DNA from: Zygnema circumcarinatum SAG 698-1b
Lineage: Eukaryota > Plantae > Zygnematophyceae
Assembly: GCA_037447605.1 (NCBI GenBank)
Contig: CM074805.1
Coordinates: forward strand, 5,055,361-5,119,360
Reading direction: 5' to 3'
Length of the DNA: 64,000 nucleotides
Shown in pieces: positions 48,973-61,844 of the stretch. A program made the position numbers and the translations under genes. Under the pieces are notes generated by a model that was given only the letters and a program-made list of their open reading frames with translations, made no database searches and was not told where the DNA came from. How positions within the stretch are numbered: the stretch's first letter is position 1; every line of letters begins with the position of its first letter.

Positions 48973-51122
48973 CCTAAAACCCTAAAAAACCTTAAAACCC
49001 TAAAACCCTAAAAACCCTAAAACCCTAAAAACCCTAAAACCCTAAAAACCCTAAAACCCTAAAAACCCTAAAAACCCTAAAACCCTAAAACCCTAAAACC
49101 AAAACCTCCTGGGGTAAAACCCTAAAACTTAAAAACCCCTAAAACCCTAAAAAACCCTAAAACCCTAAAACCCTAAAACCTCAAAACCCTAAAACCCTAA
49201 AACCCTAAACCCTAAAAACCCTAAAACCCTAAACCCTAAAACCCTAAAAACCCTAAAACCCTAAAACCCTAAAAAACCCTAAAAACCCTAAAAAACCTAA
49301 AAACCCCAAAAACCCCAAAAAACCAAAAAAACCTAAAAACCCAAAAAACCCTAAAAACCCCAAAAACCCTAAAAACCCCAAAAACCCTAAAAAACCTAAA
49401 AAAAAACCCCAAAAACCCCAAAAACCCTAAAAAACCCTAAAACCCTAAAACCCTGGGAAAACCCTAAAAACCCTCCTAAAAACTTCTGCAAAAACCCTAA
49501 AACCCTAAAACCCTAAAAACCCTAAAACCCTAAACCCTAAAACCTTGCAAAACCCTCCTAAAACCCTAAAAACCTCCTAAAAGTAAAACCCTAAAACCCT
49601 AAAACCCTAAAAACCCTAAAAACCCTAGTAAAAACCCTAAAAACCCTAAAAACCCTAAAACCCTAAAACCCTAAAAACCCTAAAACCCTAAAACCCTCAA
49701 AACCCTAAAAACCCTAAAAAACCCCTAAAAACCCTAAAAAACCCTAAAAACCCTAAAAAAAAACCCTAAAAAAAAACCCTAAAAACCCTAAAAACCCTAA
49801 AAAACCCTAAAAAAACCCTAAAAAAACCCTAAAAAAAACCCTAAAACCCTAAAACCCTAAAACCCTAAAACCCTAAAACCCTAAAACCCTGGGAAAACCC
49901 TAAAACCCTAAAACCCTAAAACCCTAAAAACCCTAAAACCCTAAAACCCTAAAAACCCTAAAACCCTGGGAAACCCTTAAAAACCCTAAAAACCTTAAAA
50001 CCCTAAAACCCTAAAAACCCTAAAAACCCTAAAACCCTGGGGTAAAAACCCTAAAACCCTAAAACCCTAAAACCCTAAAAACCCTAAAACCCTAAAACCC
50101 TAAAACCCTAAAACCCTAAAACCCTAAAACCCCAAAACCCTAAAACCCTAAAACCCTAAAACCCTCTAAAACCCTAAAAACCCCAAAACCCTAAAACCCT
50201 AAAACCCTGGGTAAAACCCTAAAAACCCTAAAACCCCAAAACCCTAAAACCCTAAAACCCTAAAACCCTAAAACCCTAAAACCCTAAAAACCCTAAAACC
50301 CTAAAACCCTAAAACCCTAAAACCCTAAAACCCTAAAAACCCTAAAACCCTAAAACCCAAAACCCTAAAACCCTAAAAAACCCTAAAACCCTAAAACCCT
50401 AAAACCCTTGGGAAAACCCTAAAACCCTAAAACCCTTAAAAACCCTAAAACCCTAAAACCCTAAAACCCTAAAACTCCCAAAACCCTAAAAACCCTAAAA
50501 CCCTAAAACTCCTAAAACTCTAAAAACCCTAAAAACCCCAAAACCCTAAAACCCTAAAACCCTGGGGTAAAAACCCCTAAAACTCAAAACCCTAAAACCC
50601 AAAACCCCAAAACCCTAAAACTCCTAAAACCCTAAAAACCCTAAAACCTCTAAAACCCTAAAACCCTAAAAACCCTAAAACCCTAAAAACCCTAAAAACC
50701 CTAAAACCCTAAAAACCCTAAAACCCTAAAACCCTAAAACTCCTAAAACCCTAAAACCCTAAAAACCCTAAAACCCTAAAAACCCTAAAACCTAAAACCC
50801 TAAAACCCTAAAACCCTAAAACCCTAAAACCCTAACAACAACCCTAACAACCCTAAAACCTTAGAAACCTAAAACCCTAAACCCTAACAACCCTAAAACC
50901 CTAAAACCCTAAAAACCCTAAAAACCCAAAAACCCTAAAACCCTAAAAACCCTAAAAACCCTAAAAAACACTTTCCCCTCGTCTTTTCCCTCTTTTCTCT
51001 CCTTCTAAAAACCCTAAAAACCCTAAAAACCCTAAAAACCCTAAAAACCCTAAAAACCCTAAAACCCTAAAAACCCTTAAAACCCTAAAAACCCTAAAAA
51101 CCCCTAAAAACCCTAAAAACCC
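48973..51122 (+). repeat. Telomere-type array (CCCTAAAA)n = (TTTTAGGG)n, about 2.1 kb, with CCCTAAAAA, CCCTAAA, CCCTGGG and CCCTAACAA variants
   Basis: Directly visible tandem 8-mer starting right after the 100-N gap (48873-48972), with the C-rich strand on +. Confidence 0.97.
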
Positions 51123-52030
51123 TTTTCCCTCGTTTCCCTCTTTTCTCCCTTTTCCCCCTTTTCCCTCTTTTTTCCTTTTCCCCCGTTTCCTTCTTTTCCC
51201 TCTGTTCCCTCTTTTCACTCATTTCCCGGTTTACCCTCATTTCCCGGTTTTCCCTCATTTCCCGGTTTTCGCTCATTTCCCGGTTTTCCCCCTTATCCCC
51301 CTTTTTCCTCCTTTCCCTCTTTTCTCTTCTTTCCCTCTTTTCCCTCTTTTCCCTCTTTTCCGTCTTTTTTTTCGTTTTTCCTGTTTTCCCATCTTGTCCC
51401 TCTTTTCCTCCTTTTCCCCCTTTTCCCTCTTGTCCCTCTTTTCCCTCGTTTCCCTTTTTCCCCTCTCTCCCGTTTCCTCTCTTTCCCTATTTTTCCCTCG
51501 TCTCTCCCTTTTCCCTCTTTTCCCTCGTTTCTCTCTTTTCCCTCTTTTCCCTCTTTTCCTACTTTTCCCTCTTTTCCCCCGTTTTCCTCTTTTCCCGCCT
51601 TTCCCTTTTTTCCTCTTTTCCCTCTTTTGCCTCTTTTTCCTCTTTTCTCTCTTTTCCCTCTTTTCCCTTTTTTCCCTCGTTTTACCTCTTTTCCCTCTTT
51701 TCCCTCGTTTTCCTCTTGTCCCTCTTTTCCCTCTTTTCCCATTTTTCCCTCGTTTCCCTCTTTTCCTTCTTTTCGCTCTTTTTTCTTTTTTCCTTCTTTT
51801 CCCTCTTTTCCCCTTTTCCCCTTTTTCCCTCCTTTCCCTCTTTTCCCTTTTTCCCGTCCTTTCCCTCTTTTCCCTCTTTTCCCTGTTTTCCCTCTTTTCG
51901 TTCTTTTCCCTCTTTTCCCTATTTTCCCTTTTTCCCCTATTTTCCCTCTTTTCCCTCTTTTTCCTGTTTTCCCACTTTTCCGTTCTTTTCCCACTTTCCC
52001 CTCGTCTTTTCCCTCTTTTCTCTCCTTCTA
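51121..52030 (+). repeat. Pyrimidine-rich degenerate (CCCTCTTTT)n-like tract next to the telomeric array
   Basis: About 900 bp of nearly pure C/T with a roughly 9-nt period. A 45-bp string occurs exactly at both 50969-51013 and 51992-52036. Confidence 0.9.
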
Positions 52031-52048
52031 AAAACCTTAAAAACCTGG

Positions 52049-52258
52049 GATATATCGCAGATTGATTCGAGTGCAATTTATTGTTATATATCATAGGTCT
52101 ATATTAGTGCAGAATACGGGATATATCACAGAGGGATTTGAGTGCAATTTATTCCTATATATTGCAAGGGGATTCTAATGCAGAATATCAAGATATATCA
52201 CAGAGTGATTTGAGTGCAACTTATTGTTATATATCGCAGAGGGGTTCTAGTGCAATTC
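52049..52258. repeat. Subtelomere-like minisatellite, 3 x about 72 bp
   Basis: GATATATC(A/G)CAGA...GAGTGCAA(T/C)TTATT units start at 52049, 52120 and 52192; each has two related halves of about 36 bp. Confidence 0.85.
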
Positions 52259-52559: not shown

Positions 52560-53677
52560 TCAGTTGCCATCTAGGTCTCCCTTCAACCGATCCCACGGTT
52601 CGCTACGTACGCTAAATGCTCGATGGGCCAACGCTTTCCGCTTCTCAAACATGTCCCGCCGTCGGCGACTCTCCGCTCGATCGACCAATCCCGCCCTGAT
52701 GAAAAGTTGCTTCGCGGTCTCCCTGTGCCCAAGAAGCTCTTCGACCTCTGCTGTTTCCTGCACAGCCCCACCAAAACAATTTATTGGAGAAGACTGTCTC
52801 CCACAAGTCCAAACTCTTCTGTATAAATGCATGTGTCACGTATTGTCGCCTGGGCACACTGCATAAATCCACTACCCTCAAACCCCTTTCTAAGAAAACT
52901 AAGGGTTTTTAGGCTTCATTTCGTTCAAGAAGAAAAAGGGCCTCGTCTGCCAGGAAACTCACTTGGAGGACTGCCGCGTTGTTGGGCTCTGCCGTTAACG
53001 CAAGTGCCAGCAACTCCCGCGCTTCCTGCAGGTTTCCATGCAGTTGTCGTTCCAATCGGGCGTACGCCTGTCACCACTCCCCCAACCTCCAATCAACGCA
53101 ACAGCATTGTCTTCAACCAGACAATGACCACTTACCAACCTAATAAGTAGCTCAACTGAAGCGACGAGGTGTACGATCGTCATACAAAATAAATCACTGC
53201 ATCAATCCAATCACGGGCAAGTAGATACACAGATCCCCTACTACGGAGTAGTGCTCTCCAAGATAAACTGCCTCTCCCTACTATGTTGAATGCTGTAGTC
53301 TCCATCTCTTAACTCCATTCCATTCCTGTATGAAACGAAACGCATACGAAATCCCTCCGCTCTTTCTGAACTTTCAATGATTTGTCCGCAATCTGTTTGC
53401 AGCTGATGTCTTCTACCTTACAGGTGATGACTTCTTTATTCGATACTACTCCCATTTAAGTCGGAACCGAATTGCCATGATAAGTCAGACATTGCAGGCA
53501 CTTCACGATAAAAGTTGATTCTCGAACAGGAAGACTACAATGTCGCAGAGACATTCATAGCCATCCTAGCAAGAGACGAGTGGGAACTGGAAGAGAATAA
53601 CTGCCATAAAGAGGATCAAACATCAAGGTGTGGCTTTTGCGGCAAAAACCAACCTTGCTATGGATGCCAATTTAAGG

Positions 53678-53708
<31 letters not shown>

Positions 53709-56700
53709 CTAAAACAATACCCCGTCTGATATCCATAAGTCTTCCCCTATGCCGCACATCTAAACTTCATTGCATACAAACTGCCGTCAGAGGCATGCAC
53801 TACAAGCTCACCTGCAAACAGGCGACATCGGCAGGCGCAAGCTCCAACACTCTCCTCAACAACCGACGTGCTTCGTCCAGATTCCCTACTCTCTGCTCCA
53901 TCAGTGCCCAAGCCTGAATCCTCCAAAATTCCCATGGCACATCTGTTCAAAAAGAAAGAGAGAGAGTCTTTTGCGTACAGGAACACACTAATCACCATTG
54001 ACAACGCCTCGTGGCATTACGAGTTCTTCGAATTTCGCCCAAGCGAAAGTCGAGGGGCGAAAGTCGAGGAATTCAAAAAAAAAGAAAGCAGCAAGCCAGG
54101 GCAGCTAAGGAATTTCTTCAGCTTTTTTTAAATGAATTAGCTAGCTGCGAAGAGAACCTAAAACAGCAGTCATGGTGTTGGCCAACAATTCGACATCGCA
54201 GCAGTTGAAATGTAAGCACAAAATGACTTCAAGCAAAGGAATTCATGTCAAGGCCTGCCCTTATGCTCCAACACACGCACACCAATGCTCTAGAAACAGT
54301 TTGCATCATGCCATAACAGCCGAGATATGCCTCGAAAAAACTCCAAGGCTTGTGTTAGAGAAACTTCCCCGCGTAATAGCTCAAGGACCCTTTCCTCAAC
54401 TGCATAACTGCGCCATGCAAAGCTGCTAGGAATTGCATCACGTGAGGATGCACATAATCTAAGGCTAGCTTTCCACAATGCTGGGGTACAGGATGGCTAG
54501 CAGCATTCGCTGGAAGCCCAACTTCCAAAGTCATGCAGCGCTGCAATTGCTGACAGGCGCGTCTGCAGCAGCAATAGCCGCGCACTTTGATCATAAGGAA
54601 ATGAAGGACTGAAAAGGTGCCTACCCACCTGCCAAGCATAGACTGCCTGCGGAGCTACATCTACACAGTGCTGGTAAAGCTGTCGAGCCTTTCTCCAGCC
54701 TTCTTGGGTGTTCATCCGTCCTTCATGATGAGCCCACGCCTGCGTGAATGAAAACTTTCCCAGTAAATAGCAACCAATTATAATCATGGCATCTTCCTTT
54801 CAGATCCCGACAGTTATCCGTATCGCTTACCACCACTTTCTAACTCACCTGCAGTGTATGGATATTGTTGGGCGTGACTTGTAAAGCTCGACGAAACAGT
54901 GACCGCATGCGCTTAACATTTCCAAGCTCTGCCTCCATTACTCCCCAAGCCTGCGTCCACCCCTCTCAACCTCTGTATGCGTTGTTTACATTACGGTCCA
55001 CATAATCTCCTATGCAGACAAACTCTGCTTGTCTCACCATTCTGACCCATTCCAGTTTTGTAAAATCCCTGTTTTCCAACCGGAGAAGCTCGATAAGCTC
55101 AAAAACCTAACAGCCGAAAACAAACGTTGACTAATGCAACTTTCCCTAGATAACGAATGCGCCTTTTCTATCAACAGCCGACAAGTTCTACTCCGTCAGC
55201 ATTCAAAGAGTGCACGCCCCAAAAGCAGCAAGGAGAGATTCCATGCTTTTGCGAGTGTCCAGCACCTGCCAACAGACGACGTCGTACGGAGCGGCCTGCG
55301 CCGCCCGGCGGAAGTAGGTCCGCGCGAGGCCCCAGTTGTGCGGCGCCTTCTCGAGGAGCGCGCGCGCGTGCAGGACGGGGGCGCTGCGCGGCCGCAGCCG
55401 CTCCGCGCGGACCAACAGCTCCCGCGCGCGCGCCCACTGCCCGCACCGCTTCTCCAGCATCGCCCACGCGTGCAGGCCCACTACCTCAGCTTCCACCACT
55501 TCCGCACTCCTTTCCCCACTAGTCTGCATTGAATATGCCCAAACCACGTCCCTTACGACTGCATCCTTCATCCTACTTTTCTACCAAGCTCACAAGTCAA
55601 ACCTTGTTGCAGACATTAGAAGGAAGTCCTTTACTCGAGTCTTTCACAGCTGAGAGTAAAATTTTCATCACCAGGTCCCATTACTTGCTACTTGACTTTA
55701 TGTTTATGAAGTCACTCACTCTCTGAGCTATTTGAAGTGCTTTCTTAAATAGCTGACGGGCCCTGTCCGCCTGCCCATCATGTCCTTCCAGAGTGGCGAA
55801 GGCCTGCAACGCTCGGATGTATCTCGAACCACTCTCCCGCCAATACTCGAACACCTGAATGCTTTGTTCATAACGGCTGCGTGCAGCTTGAATATTTCCT
55901 GCTTCCCCAAAAAGCCATTCAGAGCTCTGGCTCGCTTGCTCTCACTCACAATCACTCAGAATCACTTCAGAAAGCTTTAGTGCAGTCTCCGTGTAACGTT
56001 TGATCTTTGCCCAACCTAACAAAATACAAATGGGTATGCGTGCAAGTTTATGAGCTAGCTTACCTTACGCGAAGAATTCATCCAAAATTTAGTAAACCAG
56101 TACATATCACAAACCTCATGTTTACTTGGAAACCTACGAGGACAGCGTGTTGTACTTGACAGCATGCTGCACTGCATATGAGCCCTAGTTTCGTGAGGGC
56201 CACATCTCACCAGACTTGCGCTCCAGCTGTGCGTAGTGCACCCACATATTCGCGTTCAACGGATGCTCCCTGATTAACTGCAGCATGTCCACTTTCACCC
56301 ACAGACCGCCATTTAGCACAGGCTCTTTCATCACCAGAACATCGTCACCCTTACGCAAAACAACGCCATAACAAGCGCCCTTCAATAGCTCCACCTACTC
56401 TGACCTAAGCTATTTCGCTACCTTCAGTGAGATGACGCGCTACTACCCAACAACTAGCACCAAACCATGCTCATGAAAAGACCCTGCAACTGAGTGTGTA
56501 CAAGGGTCAATTTCATGCAAATGGACTTGTAAAGACCTAAGCAGGAGGGTACAACTTGAGAGATTTGAATAATAGCGGCACAATGCATTACCGGCAGGCA
56601 ACGAAAGTTCGAATAAGTTTCAGTTTGAACTCAGTTTCTCGGCAAACATAAGCAATTTCTAGTGGTTAAGTCTGGCGCAGCTTGTCGATGGATGGTGACA

Positions 56701-56960
56701 TGGACGTTCGAGAGCCATTTGCTAGACATTCATGAGATGCATAACTCGAAATACCGACAACTGCAGATATGCCTATTTGACGTTCTGGCTAACATTCACA
56801 GTATCGTAAGTAGGCATAGATTGCATAGCTCGTTCATGCTCTGACTGCAGCTAAACCAGCTTAGCTCTTCCTTGCGAGCTGCTCGACTCAACCGCACCTG
56901 TTGTAGCAATGCTCGTGCCTGGGTCAGGCCATCTCCTCTCCGCTTCATTAGCTGCCGAAC
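52560..56960 (-). CDS. HAT (half-a-TPR) repeat region, HCF107/Mbb1-like consensus; modelled as the C-terminus of the CRSH gene
   Basis: Repeats such as QAWGVMEAELGNVKRMRSLFRRALQVTP, QAWALMEQRVGNLDEARRLLRRVLELAP, HAWAMLEKRCGQWARARELLVRAERLRP, QAYARLERQLHGNLQEARELLALALTAEP and QAFATLEGHDGQADRARQLFKKALQIA match the AW-x2-E-x3-G-x4-AR-x-L-x3-A-x4-P pattern. Confidence 0.9.
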
Positions 56961-59900
56961 TCTCTTCACTTGCTCTTCTATCTCTTGTTCTTCTTGTATT
57001 GGCCTTTTCATCGCTTCTGAAGGCGAGCTTGCTATCTCCCGCGCCAGCTCCAGTTCCTGAACCAAAGTTGGCTGTGCAATGGTAGGAGGTCTAGGACTAC
57101 GCTGTAGTACTAGCCGCCCACTACTTTTAAAACCCAGTCTGCTAAATACGGAGCTGCTTTCCCCGCCTCCAGTATCAGTATAGTCTGCCTCAGTCATCAG
57201 TGGATGAGCGATCACTGACATCTCGTCTGATGCACCGTCCTCCCTGACAGCACGGTCATCTGCCAGAGCCATTGCATGTCCGCCAATATTTGGTAACGCG
57301 ACTACCGCGTCCACTGATGCTGCCAACACCAAACAGGACCCCCCGTCTTTTCTACAGGCAGGGTCTCCCTGAGGCAAAGAATATGGCAGATTGTCTTCTC
57401 GGCCACAACCGCTTTCAACCCCCCTCGGTTCCGCCTCACCATCCAGCTCCTTGTTGCTCGAATAAAGTTCTCCTTGGAGGGCTTCTTCGATCGAAACAAG
57501 CTCTGCTCTCACTATTGAGCTGTTAGCTTCACAATTTGTCTTCTCAAACTGCCCATGATCTGCTCGGGCTAACTGTTCCAGTGGAAGCTCCTTTCTTTCA
57601 GAGCCCTGCCCAACAAACGTGTTGATCTGGACTCCATGTTGTAAGCAATCGCCAAGCTCCTTCCAGTATCGCCGATCCACTCCGGGCAAATTCCTTAGTA
57701 CTCCAATCTGGAGACCACACGCAGAACGATTAAGCCCACCGTGAATTCGATTACTCCTTAATAAACGCGCTTTGCTGTTTTCACAAAAGACTGGACTGGA
57801 AGCCGTAAAGCAGATTCTCGAGTATTCCTGAGTTGTTTAGGGTTTTCAGGGTTTTTAAAAAACGTGCAGAGTAAGCACTGACTTGGCGCCGAAACTCTGC
57901 AAATTCTGCTGCACTGATGCTTCCATCTTTGTTTGCATCTAACAAAGCCATCAGCTCCTCCACATCCTCGGAAGAATTAGGAAGTCCCACGGCCACCTCT
58001 GCCACCACCGAATGCACCTCCTCCATGCTGATGCTTCCGTCGCCATTCCGGTCAAACATTGCGAACATATGATCCGTTTCAGCATCTGATAAGTTTGTCT
58101 GCATTCTCTCGTCTGACATCGTCCTTGAATCATTGAACGGCATGTCTGCAAGTTCAGCCATAGCCTCCATAATCGCCCTCAGTTGCTGCACCTGCACTGC
58201 CCCCCTCCCCCCCAAAAAAATCCAGCATGCATGCATGAAACAATCACTCTCCTGCCAGAACGCGATAAGCCCTTTGACTCCCACTTCAAAGCACAACCAC
58301 CTACGTAAAGTGCTGTCAGAGCTGGCAGACGTGCAATCCTTAAGACTCCCTAGAGTGCGTGGACATTCCTCTCCCAAGTACCTGTCTTCGGGGCACTCCA
58401 GCTCAAGTTATCTAAAACGCACGCCAGTCGGGATAATGACGTTTCAGATAACTTTAAGGACTGACACGACTAGTTGCTGCTAGTTGATTGATGAAAGGGA
58501 ATTCGGAAGTTGTGCACTATTCAAAAATCATGGGGAACATCCGTAACCTCAGCATTGAAACCGTAGCATGAAGGACACTTCTTCAATGTCACATTTTGGC
58601 CCGCTCGCCAGACTAATTACCTGCTTGGGGTCTGTAAGACCACCCTTGTAAGCCCCATGTGCAGCCGCACCATGGACAGCTAGAGCGTCCATAGCCGTCG
58701 TTCGAATCTGCAGTTCCAACGGAGGACTACATCGTTCTTCGTCGATGTGCACCGCAAAATGTAGGCTTTGGTAGTTGTTCTTTTTCGGTTTGGCAATATA
58801 ATCTTTTGAACGGTCAGGAATCTCCACCCAGAGAGAAGTAGCAATCTGCCCCACGAGATAGCATGCCTGCACTCCTCTCGCCTCTTCTTCATCGGCAGAT
58901 CCTCCCTTGCGTGGTGAGACCACTACCCTGAGACCAAGAAGGTCAAAAACCTCATCACGACGACGACCATCACGAAGGAGCTTTTTCATCGTGCTATAAA
59001 GGCTCTTGCAGCGGCCCACAATGCTAAAACCGTCAACCAAGTCTCTCAGCCGTTCATTTGCCCACAATGCAGTTTCAAGCTTGTGTCTGCAAGCGTCAAC
59101 TGTCCTCTCCCCAGCTGGCCACTGCATCTGAAGCCACTCCTCCATGGAACGATACGACTGTGGAAAAAGCACTCTGAAAGCAGAATCCTCAAGCTCCCAC
59201 AGAAGCGAGCCAGTCCCAAGAGCGTGGGCCATCGGAGCCCAGACCTGCATAGTCTCCAGTGCGACCACCTGCTGGCGCCACCGGGGTAGAGACACCAGGT
59301 GCCTCATCGTGTCGAGACACGATGCCAGCTCAACTACAATGGACCGCGGGTCATGAAAGCTGAGGCAAAACTGGCGGAGGGATTTCGCAGTCGCGTCGTC
59401 CAGGTTGTCGACTCGCTGAGGAGCCCCCTGGACCCTCTGGCTGTCATGCAACAGTCGGCCGACCAGCACACCCAAATGCAGCTCCACTGATCCCATGCTG
59501 ATCACACCAATCTCTACGGCCTCCCTGAGCAGCCCTGCTGCTATCGTTTCTGCATCCATCTGCACGTTGATGCATACCAGTTAGGACCGTTCCTTCAGCG
59601 TAGAAGAACATGGAACTCCCCTGTCAAACAGTATGTAACCGTAAATCACAACACAGTACGACAAGACACTCTCTGAAACGCACCCGGAGGTCAGCGAGCG
59701 TGGTGGCCATGGCCAGCGCCCTGGCAGTTCGAGAGCGTCCTCCTTCTGCAGGCGGGGCTCCTTGCAGCGCTGGGAGCGCGAGCTTGAGCGCTGCAATGAG
59801 CAGCTGCGCGGCGGAGCTGCGCGCAGAAACAGCCGGCAGACGGGGCGCCAGCGTGTCCCACGCGGCCATCAGCTCCATCACTCTGCGCCCGCCGGCCCGC

Positions 59901-60586
59901 TCCATGGCCACCACAGGCATGGGCTGCTCGGAAGAAATCCAAGCCTCTGCACCGTCGCTCTCTCCATCTGCTGCACCGCCAGCCCCTCCCCTGCTCCCTA
60001 AACTGTCGTCAAGCGTCTCCGGAGAGTGAGAACTTGGACCCGCGAACCTCTCCTCTCCTCTAGCTGCCACGTCAGCCAGCTCCTCGTCTGTGAGGAGGTC
60101 GCCGAACAAAGGAGGCTCGGCACCGCTCGCCTCCCGTGCAGAAGCGCTTTCTGAGGGCGGCCCAACGTCCCTGTACAGCGACTCCAGCTCACGCTGCATG
60201 CTGCCGTCCTGCAGCACCTCCAGGCTGCGCCACCGAGCGTGCCCCCTCCCCGAGCACCTCCGCTGAGCTCTGCGGCCCATCCGCGTTGCGGCCGGCCCTT
60301 CCTCCGCAAGCGCCGCATCTCGTCCCAGCGACGGCTGCATGGACCTATACGCCTGGACCTGCAGCAGCAGCCTCCCCCCGCGCCATGCATCCCGCTCAGA
60401 AGCCCACTCCGTGTCAACGACCCCTCGGCGGACGGGGCAGAGAGCGGAGCCTCCTGCAGCGGCCTCGCCGGGTCGGAGGGGTCGAAGCTGCAAGGCCGGG
60501 CGGGGGGCGCAGGCGGGCGGCATGGGCGCTCGCTCGTGGCGGAGGGCGGCCACGGCGGAGGGCGCATTGCAAGTGCATGCTGCCAT
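52560..60586 (-). CDS. CRSH: Ca2+-activated RelA/SpoT homolog (CRSH) with in-frame C-terminal HAT/TPR repeat array; at least 1381 aa in the model
   Basis: Exons 59684-60586 (Ala/Arg/Pro-rich transit-peptide-like N-terminus), 58621-59559 (degenerate HD: AAGLLREA; synthetase: GRCKSLYS, VFDLLGLRV, RSKDYIAKPKKNNYQSLH, LELQIRT, AAHGAYKG), 57883-58191 (EF loops DRNGDGSISMEE and DANKDGSISAAE), 56898-57707 (270 open codons), then HAT exons 56211-56277, 55966-56015, 55720-55854, 55266-55580, 54849-54950, 54629-54739, 53812-53913, 52963-53067, 52560-52757. All junctions are GT-AG and in phase. CRSH identity is near certain; the fusion is a model. Extra exons may exist in 53070-53810 and 53915-54625. 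Confidence 0.85.
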
Positions 60587-60710
60587 GCAGGGGCCGCCGC
60601 TTCAGGGCCTCTCCGCCTCCTTGCGGGGCGAGCGCACGGCAGCCATGGCCGCAGGCAGAGTGAGGCAGGGCGCAGATGCAGGCGCAGGGCGGGGCGGGGC
60701 GAGGCAGGAG

Positions 60711-61493: not shown

Positions 61494-61844
61494 ATGATGT
61501 CAACAGAGGAGATCAACAACATTGGGGTTGATTTCGCTGGCCTTCTTCGAGCTTATCGAGAAGATGTTAACTTGAGGAGAATATTGAATAAATGCGATGA
61601 TGCAAGCACAGATTTTTTTGCTGGTTGGGATGCTATGGGCATTGGGGAAAGGTTTCCAAGGTTGCGAGAATTTTATGGAGACCTTGCTTCATCATTTCCC
61701 AACACTGCTACCGTCGAGTCTGATTTTTCAGTAATTGGATGGGAGGAAGACGAGTTTTGAAAGAGTTTGACAGACTTTTCATTGGAAGGAATTCTTCACT
61801 GCAAACAGTATGATAGTTTGATCGCTCTTCGAGGGTCTCTTTGA
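61494..61844 (+). pseudogene. hAT-like transposase C-terminal (dimerisation-region) relic with an internal stop
   Basis: LREFYGDLASSFPNTATVESDFSVIGWEEDEF*KSLTDFSLEGILHCKQY has the TATVESDFS pattern of hAT C-terminal dimerisation regions. The internal TGA at 61758-61760 is plausibly from CGA. Flanks are AT-rich; no TIR pair was identified. Confidence 0.65.

Follow-up and report, generated by a model that had tools for sequence, protein, structure and literature searches.

Does the locus between positions 60586 and 52560 (minus strand) of a 64,000-nucleotide stretch of the genome of the alga Zygnema circumcarinatum SAG 698-1b (Zygnematophyceae; assembly GCA_037447605.1, contig CM074805.1, positions 5,055,361 to 5,119,360; this whole stretch is referred to as the window) encode one protein, and if so, what might such a protein do? 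An earlier reading of the DNA letters and their open reading frames (ORFs), referred to as the original prediction, had suggested that the locus specifies a CRSH-type synthetase of guanosine tetraphosphate (ppGpp) fused in frame to an array of HAT repeats, and that the fusion was undescribed. ppGpp is a main brake on chloroplast gene expression, and to our knowledge CRSH is the only known link of ppGpp to calcium signals. In vascular plants CRSH is a plastid enzyme that synthesises ppGpp upon activation by Ca2+; in bacterial RelA the C-terminal half determines the place and time of ppGpp synthesis, and plant CRSH is thought to have exchanged this half for EF-hands. The plastid HAT proteins HCF107 and Mbb1, with which the original prediction compared the repeats, bind and stabilise psbH/psbB transcripts. 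We report that the locus is a single spliced nuclear gene, which is transcribed and comprises 12 exons and approximately 1360 codons in one open frame. The encoded parts are, in order, an N-terminal extension, a dead HD domain, an intact RelA_SpoT synthetase domain, two EF-hands, an acidic linker and 9-10 HAT repeats. We regard it as highly probable that 60586-52560 is a real, single fused gene belonging to a streptophyte RSH4/CRSH-HAT family.

Transcript evidence was obtained for 55000-60700, which was compared with four sequencing runs (X1-X4) from four studies; the material consists of contigs assembled from short reads, not of single molecules. The runs look like RNA, with an intron depth of zero or a few per cent of the exon depth. 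Six junctions (59559/59684, 58189/58619, 57707/57883, 56277/56898, 55897/56210 and 55523/55720), all GT..AG on the minus strand, were found in all four runs. Among these are the two that lead into and out of the linker exon (57883>57707 and 56898>56277), as foreseen in the original prediction. One 3742-nt contig of X4 runs from 60649 across all six junctions and past 55265, and a 1865-nt contig of X1 extends from the EF-hand exon across the linker into three HAT exons; the RNA contigs start at 60649-60658 or farther upstream. When exons 1-7 are joined as the RNA junctions dictate, the resulting 3466 nt contain no stop. One gene with one mRNA, in which the synthetase is in frame with the array, is supported. 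The contigs have a loose end at 55265 in every run, and the 30 letters that follow it are the start of exon 8; exons 8-12, i.e. the part below 55265, were modelled from homology and splice rules. All eleven introns are GT-AG and in phase, on the evidence of RNA junctions for the upstream exons and of homology and splice rules below 55265. The linker forms one exon with a splice on either side, and no stop interrupts the synthetase frame within it; by our own arithmetic the chance of a 270-codon open frame is approximately 2e-6 at the local base composition.

On three contigs from other genomes (L001, L002 and L003) the parts follow one another in the same order and on a single strand, from HD/synthetase through EF-hands and a linker exon that is open for 203-284 codons to the HAT exons, and each intron sits at a position that is also found in the Zygnema gene. 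Their enzyme halves are 70-78% identical to one another and to Marchantia, and L001-L003 are therefore probably bryophytes. In L001 the linker runs into the first HAT repeat, and the synthetase into the EF-hands, without an intervening intron, and both frames are thus fixed without any assumption about splicing.

For exon 1 (59684..60586) the start was set at the first ATG that follows, in frame, a stop at 60602-60604, and the end is the 59559/59684 junction, seen in the four runs. The encoded N-terminus is rich in Ala/Arg/Pro and resembles a transit peptide; after it come an acidic stretch and the beginning of the degenerate HD domain (end ...TLADLR). The remaining HD_4 and the RelA_SpoT synthetase, identified with Pfam, are encoded by exon 2 (58621..59559), and the two EF-hands by exon 3 (57883..58191; end ...EFRRQ), which has RNA junctions at both sides. 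Intron 3 (57708..57882) is a phase-0 GT..AG intron with its junction, 57707/57883, in the four runs; read directly, the donor is CAA/GT at 57883/57882 and the acceptor cag/ATT at 57708/57707. The linker exon, exon 4 (56898..57707), is open for 270 codons with RNA junctions at both ends, and from its donor (CAG/GT at 56898/56897) the end ...ALLQQ is spliced in phase to the acceptor cag/TTA at 56278/56277, continuing into LIREHPLNAN... The first clear HAT repeat (LIREHPLNANMWVHYAQLERKS...) lies in exon 5 (56211..56277; RNA junctions 56277/56898 and 55897/56210). More repeats follow in exon 6 (55720..55898; RNA junctions and four-species alignment) and exon 7 (55266..55523; two repeats, Pfam TPR_14 E 6e-7, RNA junction 55523/55720). 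Exons 8 (54849..54950; AWGVMEAELGN..., phase 0 at both ends, GT-AG sites and homology), 9 (54629..54739; homology to L001-L003, GT-AG, in phase), 10 (53812..53913) and 11 (52963..53067; both from homology and splice sites) encode one repeat each. Exon 12 (52560..52757) completes the array with its last repeat, which is followed by a basic helix at the C-terminus (..RRRRDMFEKRK..) and by the stop codon at 52560-52562. Its acceptor is ambiguous, since 52757 and 52793 are both in frame; homology to L002 and L003 favoured 52757, and with 52793 the exon would be longer by 12 codons. The phase-0 intron, the 270-codon exon, the in-phase splice to 56277 and the eight in-phase GT-AG exons that lead from there to the stop are all as the original prediction had them, and so is its total of 9-10 repeats. 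Exons 8-11 each hold exactly one repeat (34-37 codons) between phase-0 intron boundaries, and the boundaries are identical in L002 and L003, as growth of the array by duplication of exons would lead one to expect. The G+C content is 62-69% in exon 1 and its surroundings (59500-60700) compared with 44-59% elsewhere in the gene.

The enzyme half has the features of CRSH. Exon 59559-58621 matches HD_4 (E 1e-18) and RelA_SpoT (E 2e-27) in Pfam, and read against what is known of the family, the synthetase motifs are intact (RCKSLYSTMKK, DLLGLRVV, YQSLH, ELQIRT and AHGAYKGG). The Gly of D-x-x-G-x-R is kept; RSH1 is without this synthetase glycine. The HD domain is degenerate, with LLREAVE at the hydrolase His-Asp position, and hydrolase activity has presumably been lost. 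Directly C-terminal of the synthetase lies the EF-hand pair (58191-57883; Pfam EF-hand_7 E 6e-20) with two canonical loops of 12 residues each (DRNGDGSISMEE and DANKDGSISAAE). In a sequence search with the synthetase exon the named top matches were all "GTP diphosphokinase CRSH" (45-52% identity) and none was RSH1 or RSH2/3; a few closer matches were unnamed, exon-sized fragments. The stand-alone CRSH of vascular plants (Arabidopsis At3g17470 and rice CRSH1-3) is approximately 50% identical over HD and synthetase and shares the dead hydrolase, the EF-hand pair, the tail motif and the phase-0 intron just past the second EF-hand. Given the dead HD, the full set of synthetase motifs, the two EF-hands and this homology, Ca2+-activated ppGpp synthesis would be a safe inference from the characterised Arabidopsis and rice enzymes.

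The two halves meet inside the linker exon. Homology links its residues 1 to ~25 (IGVLRNLPGVDRRY...) with the C-terminal tail of CRSH from land plants, to which the original prediction had likened them (the L002 counterpart is VKIFENLAGVDRQF...LDQKLL). Its last ~75 residues, where the solenoid begins, are conserved with unfused HAT relatives and match the proteins P0146 and P0155. The join between CRSH and HAT can hence be placed within this exon. The middle is acidic and resists alignment across species, but its frame is open in each of the four genomes (this gene and L001-L003), which argues that the linker is translated. The linker as a whole has a net charge of -15 and an isoelectric point (pI) of 4.75 and matches no Pfam family. 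Reading the sequence disclosed no basic, transit-like internal start in the linker, as had been noted before. Its acidic, fast-evolving core of ~170-200 residues is presumably disordered. Across the family the linker varies from ~100 to ~430 residues, and such a long, variable, unconserved and acidic segment is more suggestive of a flexible tether than of a fixed regulatory interface.

The array consists of tandem helix pairs of ~34-37 residues, in which the motif W-x-A-W-A-x-x-E...G-N...A-R...P is visible, and relatives match HAT_PRP39_N/C and HAT_Syf1 besides TPR_14. It resembles HCF107 (Arabidopsis) and Mbb1 (Chlamydomonas) in its tandem HAT repeats, similar length, basic charge and plastid context. 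With a 400-position profile of the array, the fused proteins and proteins of lycophytes and ferns are collinear and give a single full-length match (236-597 bits); proteins named HCF107 give shifted fragments only (70-150 bits). In a maximum-likelihood tree the CRSH-linked HAT family and HCF107 form separate clades, each with 100/100 support; the comparison set comprised proteins named HCF107, without Chlamydomonas Mbb1 itself. Mesostigma and Chlorokybus are the earliest branches of the CRSH-linked clade; the Zygnema array groups with P0155, P0146 and a Closterium pair, and the arrays of Marchantia, L002 and L003 cluster with unfused proteins of lycophytes and ferns. Both HAT families, with one member of each, are present in Marchantia, Selaginella, Diphasiastrum and Ceratopteris. 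We therefore rejected orthology of the array with HCF107: the true HCF107 proteins are fragmentary on the profile and fall in a clade of their own. The idea that Arabidopsis HCF107 (probably At3g17040) lies near CRSH At3g17470 as a relic of fission was dropped as well, the fused array not being HCF107. HCF107 and Mbb1 are thus the nearest characterised relatives, as the original prediction had proposed, yet by the present analysis the array represents a separate and uncharacterised sister family (a paralogue). Databases label the unfused relatives "Mbb1-like", and in a protein atlas we found generic TPR clusters and one cluster named after Mbb1. Across the family the array has a charge of +6 to +19 and a pI of 8.9-10.1, similar to HCF107 arrays and unlike the linker and EF-hand region, both of which are acidic. 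The two halves are conserved to a similar degree, HAT with 66/44/34% and the enzyme with 67/57/49% identity to P0155, Marchantia and Mesostigma, respectively.

To find relatives, 1.8 billion representative proteins were searched with the HAT stretch of L001, followed by Pfam scans and name look-up. Full-length fused proteins are deposited for Marchantia polymorpha (Mp1g27830, Mapoly0002s0095; gene model of 1412 amino acids, aa), Closterium sp. (CAI5474060.1; 1415 aa), Mesostigma viride (Mv15166; 1259 aa) and Chlorokybus (Chrsp29S04492; 1065 aa, with RSH at 98-576 and HAT at 677-1055), and two transcript assemblies contain fused ORFs of 1411 and 1216 aa. The 1216-aa ORF is P0155, the closest relative, with 66-67% identity in both halves. 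HD_4, RelA_SpoT, EF-hands and C-terminal HAT/TPR occur together in one frame in P0125, P0126, P0153, P0155, P0171 and P0216 according to Pfam. The co-occurrence that the original prediction had proposed to look for thus exists in relatives, and the fusion is hence not unique to Zygnema. Nor does land-plant CRSH generally end shortly after the EF-hands, as had been assumed, the Marchantia gene model being fused. The unfused top matches of the HAT search and P0121 have no RSH domain in Pfam. Of the Mesostigma isoforms considered as a stand-alone CRSH none was clean; several truncated isoforms are annotated. The streptophyte proteins share with Zygnema the order of parts, the CRSH tail motif, a variable linker, a HAT array of ~400 aa with a basic end, and arrays that are collinear and form a single clade; they differ in identity (45-67% in the enzyme, 34-66% in HAT) and in the length and sequence of the linker.

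The architecture has also been noted in print. Avilan et al. 2019 (PMC6881373) mention C-terminal TPR domains in RSH4 of some green algae, a remark for which they cite Ito et al. 2017. Their Table S2 lists Klebsormidium nitens GAQ91082.1 with "TPR" and Chlorella variabilis XP_005851775.1 with "FHA, TPR". The K. nitens sequence, given in the supplement, contains the synthetase and two EF-hands, followed by the tail motif (..FRRRIAVLRDLP..); a linker rich in Gly and Ala, ~430 residues long, connects these to HAT repeats. Two reviews (one of them PMC10107265) state that algal RSH4 often has novel domains. The record of the fusion thus amounts to "TPR" in one table and one sentence, with no mention of repeat family, distribution or function (for Ito et al. 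2017 this applies to the part cited by Avilan et al. 2019), and our literature search gave no functional study of the fusion and no paper that treats CRSH together with HCF107. The Zygnema gene is accordingly a new example of a fusion that was already in databases and briefly in print, and not a new kind of protein.

Separate genes for the two halves are found in lycophytes and ferns. The stand-alone CRSH loci L004, L005 and L007 have the same phase-0 intron after the second EF-hand, and their last exon opens with VEL(V/M)RNL..D(Q/E)YK.IL(D/N)EKL and stops after 44 codons, with no HAT exons downstream; in Zygnema, in contrast, the corresponding exon runs for 270 codons and is followed by eight HAT exons. 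DYW-type PPR editing-factor genes adjoin stand-alone CRSH loci from metagenome assemblies (L004:4513-5880 and L008:759-2645), which identifies these loci as land-plant DNA in environmental samples. There is no RSH sequence within 10 kb upstream of the Selaginella HAT gene, which argues that the separation is real in this plant. A 652-aa model without Pfam match lies 156 bp upstream of this "Mbb1-like" gene on the same strand (GL377711.1, L010:7887-9845); it has no similarity to the Zygnema protein or to the N-terminal regions of the fern and lycophyte proteins, and might be a split gene model. No seed-plant member of the HAT family turned up, which, given the search design, is suggestive and not a proof. 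The simplest history, as far as the present analysis goes, would be a fusion in or before the streptophyte ancestor and a later fission. We know of no paper that sets out this history or the assignment of the array to its own HAT family.

What might the fused protein do? Its layout, with catalysis in the N-terminal half and a further region at the C-terminus, is that of bacterial RelA/Rel/SpoT. In the bacterial RSH proteins the C-terminal region makes contact with tRNA and the ribosome and exerts control over the synthetase (PMC10107265). The bacterial C-terminus (TGS, helical, zinc-finger and RRM(ACT) domains) has no homology to the C-terminal domains in Zygnema, where an EF-hand pair would be the sensor and the helical repeat would sit on a long flexible tether. 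We propose that upon a rise in Ca2+ the CRSH half would make ppGpp, and that the strongly basic solenoid, approximately ten helix pairs and a long basic C-terminal helix, would act as a docking module on the tether. Docking would put Ca2+-dependent ppGpp synthesis beside a partner, likeliest a plastid RNA or ribonucleoprotein. The two modules, being encoded by separate genes in lycophytes and ferns, would be able to work apart, probably in one pathway. A docking role is favoured because the linker is variable and unconserved and because the halves survive as separate genes in some plants, and RNA or ribonucleoprotein because the nearest characterised relatives bind RNA and the array carries the same charge. 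We give this explanation as a whole, i.e. a fused Ca2+-switched synthetase with a tethered docking solenoid for which RNA is the likeliest partner, a probability of roughly 0.55; that the docked partner is in fact RNA we suggest tentatively, by analogy with HCF107 and Mbb1.

Several observations weigh against this explanation and bear on the alternatives. Plastid import is predicted from a transit-peptide-like composition only (net charge +3 over residues 1-60). The array being a paralogue and not an orthologue of HCF107 and Mbb1, their psbH/psbB targets cannot be transferred to it, and in this respect the comparison made in the original prediction does not hold. The structure was modelled on P0155, a relative of 63-66% identity, and not on the Zygnema protein itself; the AlphaFold model of the P0155 array (predicted local distance difference test score, pLDDT, 89) has 20 repeat helices, i.e. 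ten helix pairs, followed by a long basic terminal helix. Its best Foldseek matches are protein-binding TPR superhelices, such as OGT (E 3e-13), SPINDLY, CTR9 (TM 0.61), TTC7, APC subunits and Tom70, and spliceosomal HAT proteins rank lower. It is possible, and about as likely as docking on RNA, that the same protein uses its solenoid to bind protein, as a scaffold, for oligomerisation, or as an autoinhibitory domain that gates the synthetase as in bacterial Rel/RelA. That TPR_14/TPR_2 score above the HAT models in Pfam, and that the array is not an HCF107 orthologue, fit such a role too. Fold, however, separates neither RNA-binding from protein-binding arrays nor TPR from HAT in the Foldseek comparison, and the nearest characterised relatives are RNA-binding HAT proteins with equally basic arrays. 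For the autoregulatory variant, an unconserved linker of ~100 to ~430 residues is a poor fit to a precise intramolecular contact, and the halves persist as separate genes in lycophytes and ferns.

The transcripts raise a different doubt. The single 1360-aa polypeptide is predicted from short-read contigs and, below 55265, from homology and splice rules, and intron 3, although spliced out in all four runs, is also retained in X2 and X3 (not detectably in X1 and X4). The bin 57674-57864, which is mostly intron 3, has a depth of 46.6 in X1 and 12.3 in X4, corresponding to the share of its 34 exonic bases, and lies far above that share in X2 (154.1) and X3 (109.9). By our own arithmetic on word depths, in which exon and junction contigs were subtracted (the relevant contigs themselves not being listed), retained intron 3 reaches ~94-112 compared with a junction depth of 185 in X2, and ~51-60 compared with 126 in X3. 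This corresponds to about one third of the transcripts in these two runs (roughly 30-40%); the other introns have depths of 0-18, i.e. near zero. Retention leads to a stop at 57781-57783, 34 codons past the EF-hands; it may be condition-dependent and truncate the protein just past the EF-hands, and might give an untethered CRSH or merely an unproductive mRNA. The depth in X1 also climbs from 5' to 3' (68.8 compared with 261.6), which may reflect 3' bias or, alternatively, shorter 3' transcripts.

The fusion mRNA could on these grounds be mainly a vehicle for separate products: a free CRSH from retention of intron 3 and a HAT protein from internal initiation or shorter transcripts, or two parts released by proteolysis of the linker after import. 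Retention in two of the four runs, with none in the other two and near-zero depths for the other introns, suggests regulation; the 3' exons are deeper in the reads, truncated isoforms are annotated in Mesostigma, and the long acidic linker is plausibly exposed to proteases. We nevertheless consider this account improbable. The spliced form is the majority in every run, in keeping with the original prediction, which retention as the main isoform would have refuted, and the in-frame fusion persists over the span from Mesostigma to Marchantia. With no transit-like start in the linker, a separately translated HAT protein would be without targeting signal. The tail read from the retained intron is not conserved in L001-L003 (5 to ~60 unrelated codons), and with many junctions downstream of its stop the retained-intron mRNA resembles a substrate of nonsense-mediated decay. 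The last alternative, neighbouring CRSH and HAT genes joined by read-through or by the short-read assembler with no fused protein, draws on the fact that a contig across two genes proves no single transcript, but is close to refuted, since the linker is a single exon with splices to the EF-hand exon on one side and the first HAT exon on the other, the CRSH frame runs without stop through the linker in four genomes though the sequence is unconserved, linker and first HAT repeat are one exon in L001, and independent transcript assemblies elsewhere encode the 1216-aa and 1411-aa fused ORFs.

Returning to the fused, docked synthetase, a more detailed version would join all parts: a fusion ancestral to Mesostigma, Chlorokybus, Klebsormidium, Zygnema, Closterium and Marchantia that split towards vascular plants, with the HAT half lost in seed plants, an array that docks Ca2+-triggered ppGpp synthesis on plastid RNAs or ribosomes, and retention of intron 3 as a switch between tethered and free enzyme. 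That all of this holds together we consider doubtful.

Regarding the surroundings of the gene, the ~3 kb directly past its 3' end (49000-52100) are of low complexity with an extreme strand bias (GC skew approximately -0.9). This DNA yields long spurious ORFs, rich in Lys/Arg/Gly/Glu on one strand and in Phe/Ser/Leu/Pro on the other. Upstream of the gene, an 88-codon ORF (61494-61760, plus strand) ends with ..TVESDFSVIGW.., which is reminiscent of the C-termini of transposases; it has no Pfam match at E 0.01.

By itself the Zygnema locus is a modest result: it provides a correct gene model and adds one member to a family that databases already contain. Together, the algal and liverwort proteins suggest that through most of streptophyte history CRSH also bore a large basic helical-repeat module, kin to plastid RNA-binding factors. 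Marchantia, with a fused gene and good genetics, provides a system in which this can be tested. Should the module indeed dock the enzyme on RNA or ribosomes, then, by the logic of gene fusion, the uncharacterised "Mbb1-like" proteins of ferns and lycophytes would be candidate partners of CRSH, and plastid ppGpp signalling would gain a spatial component.

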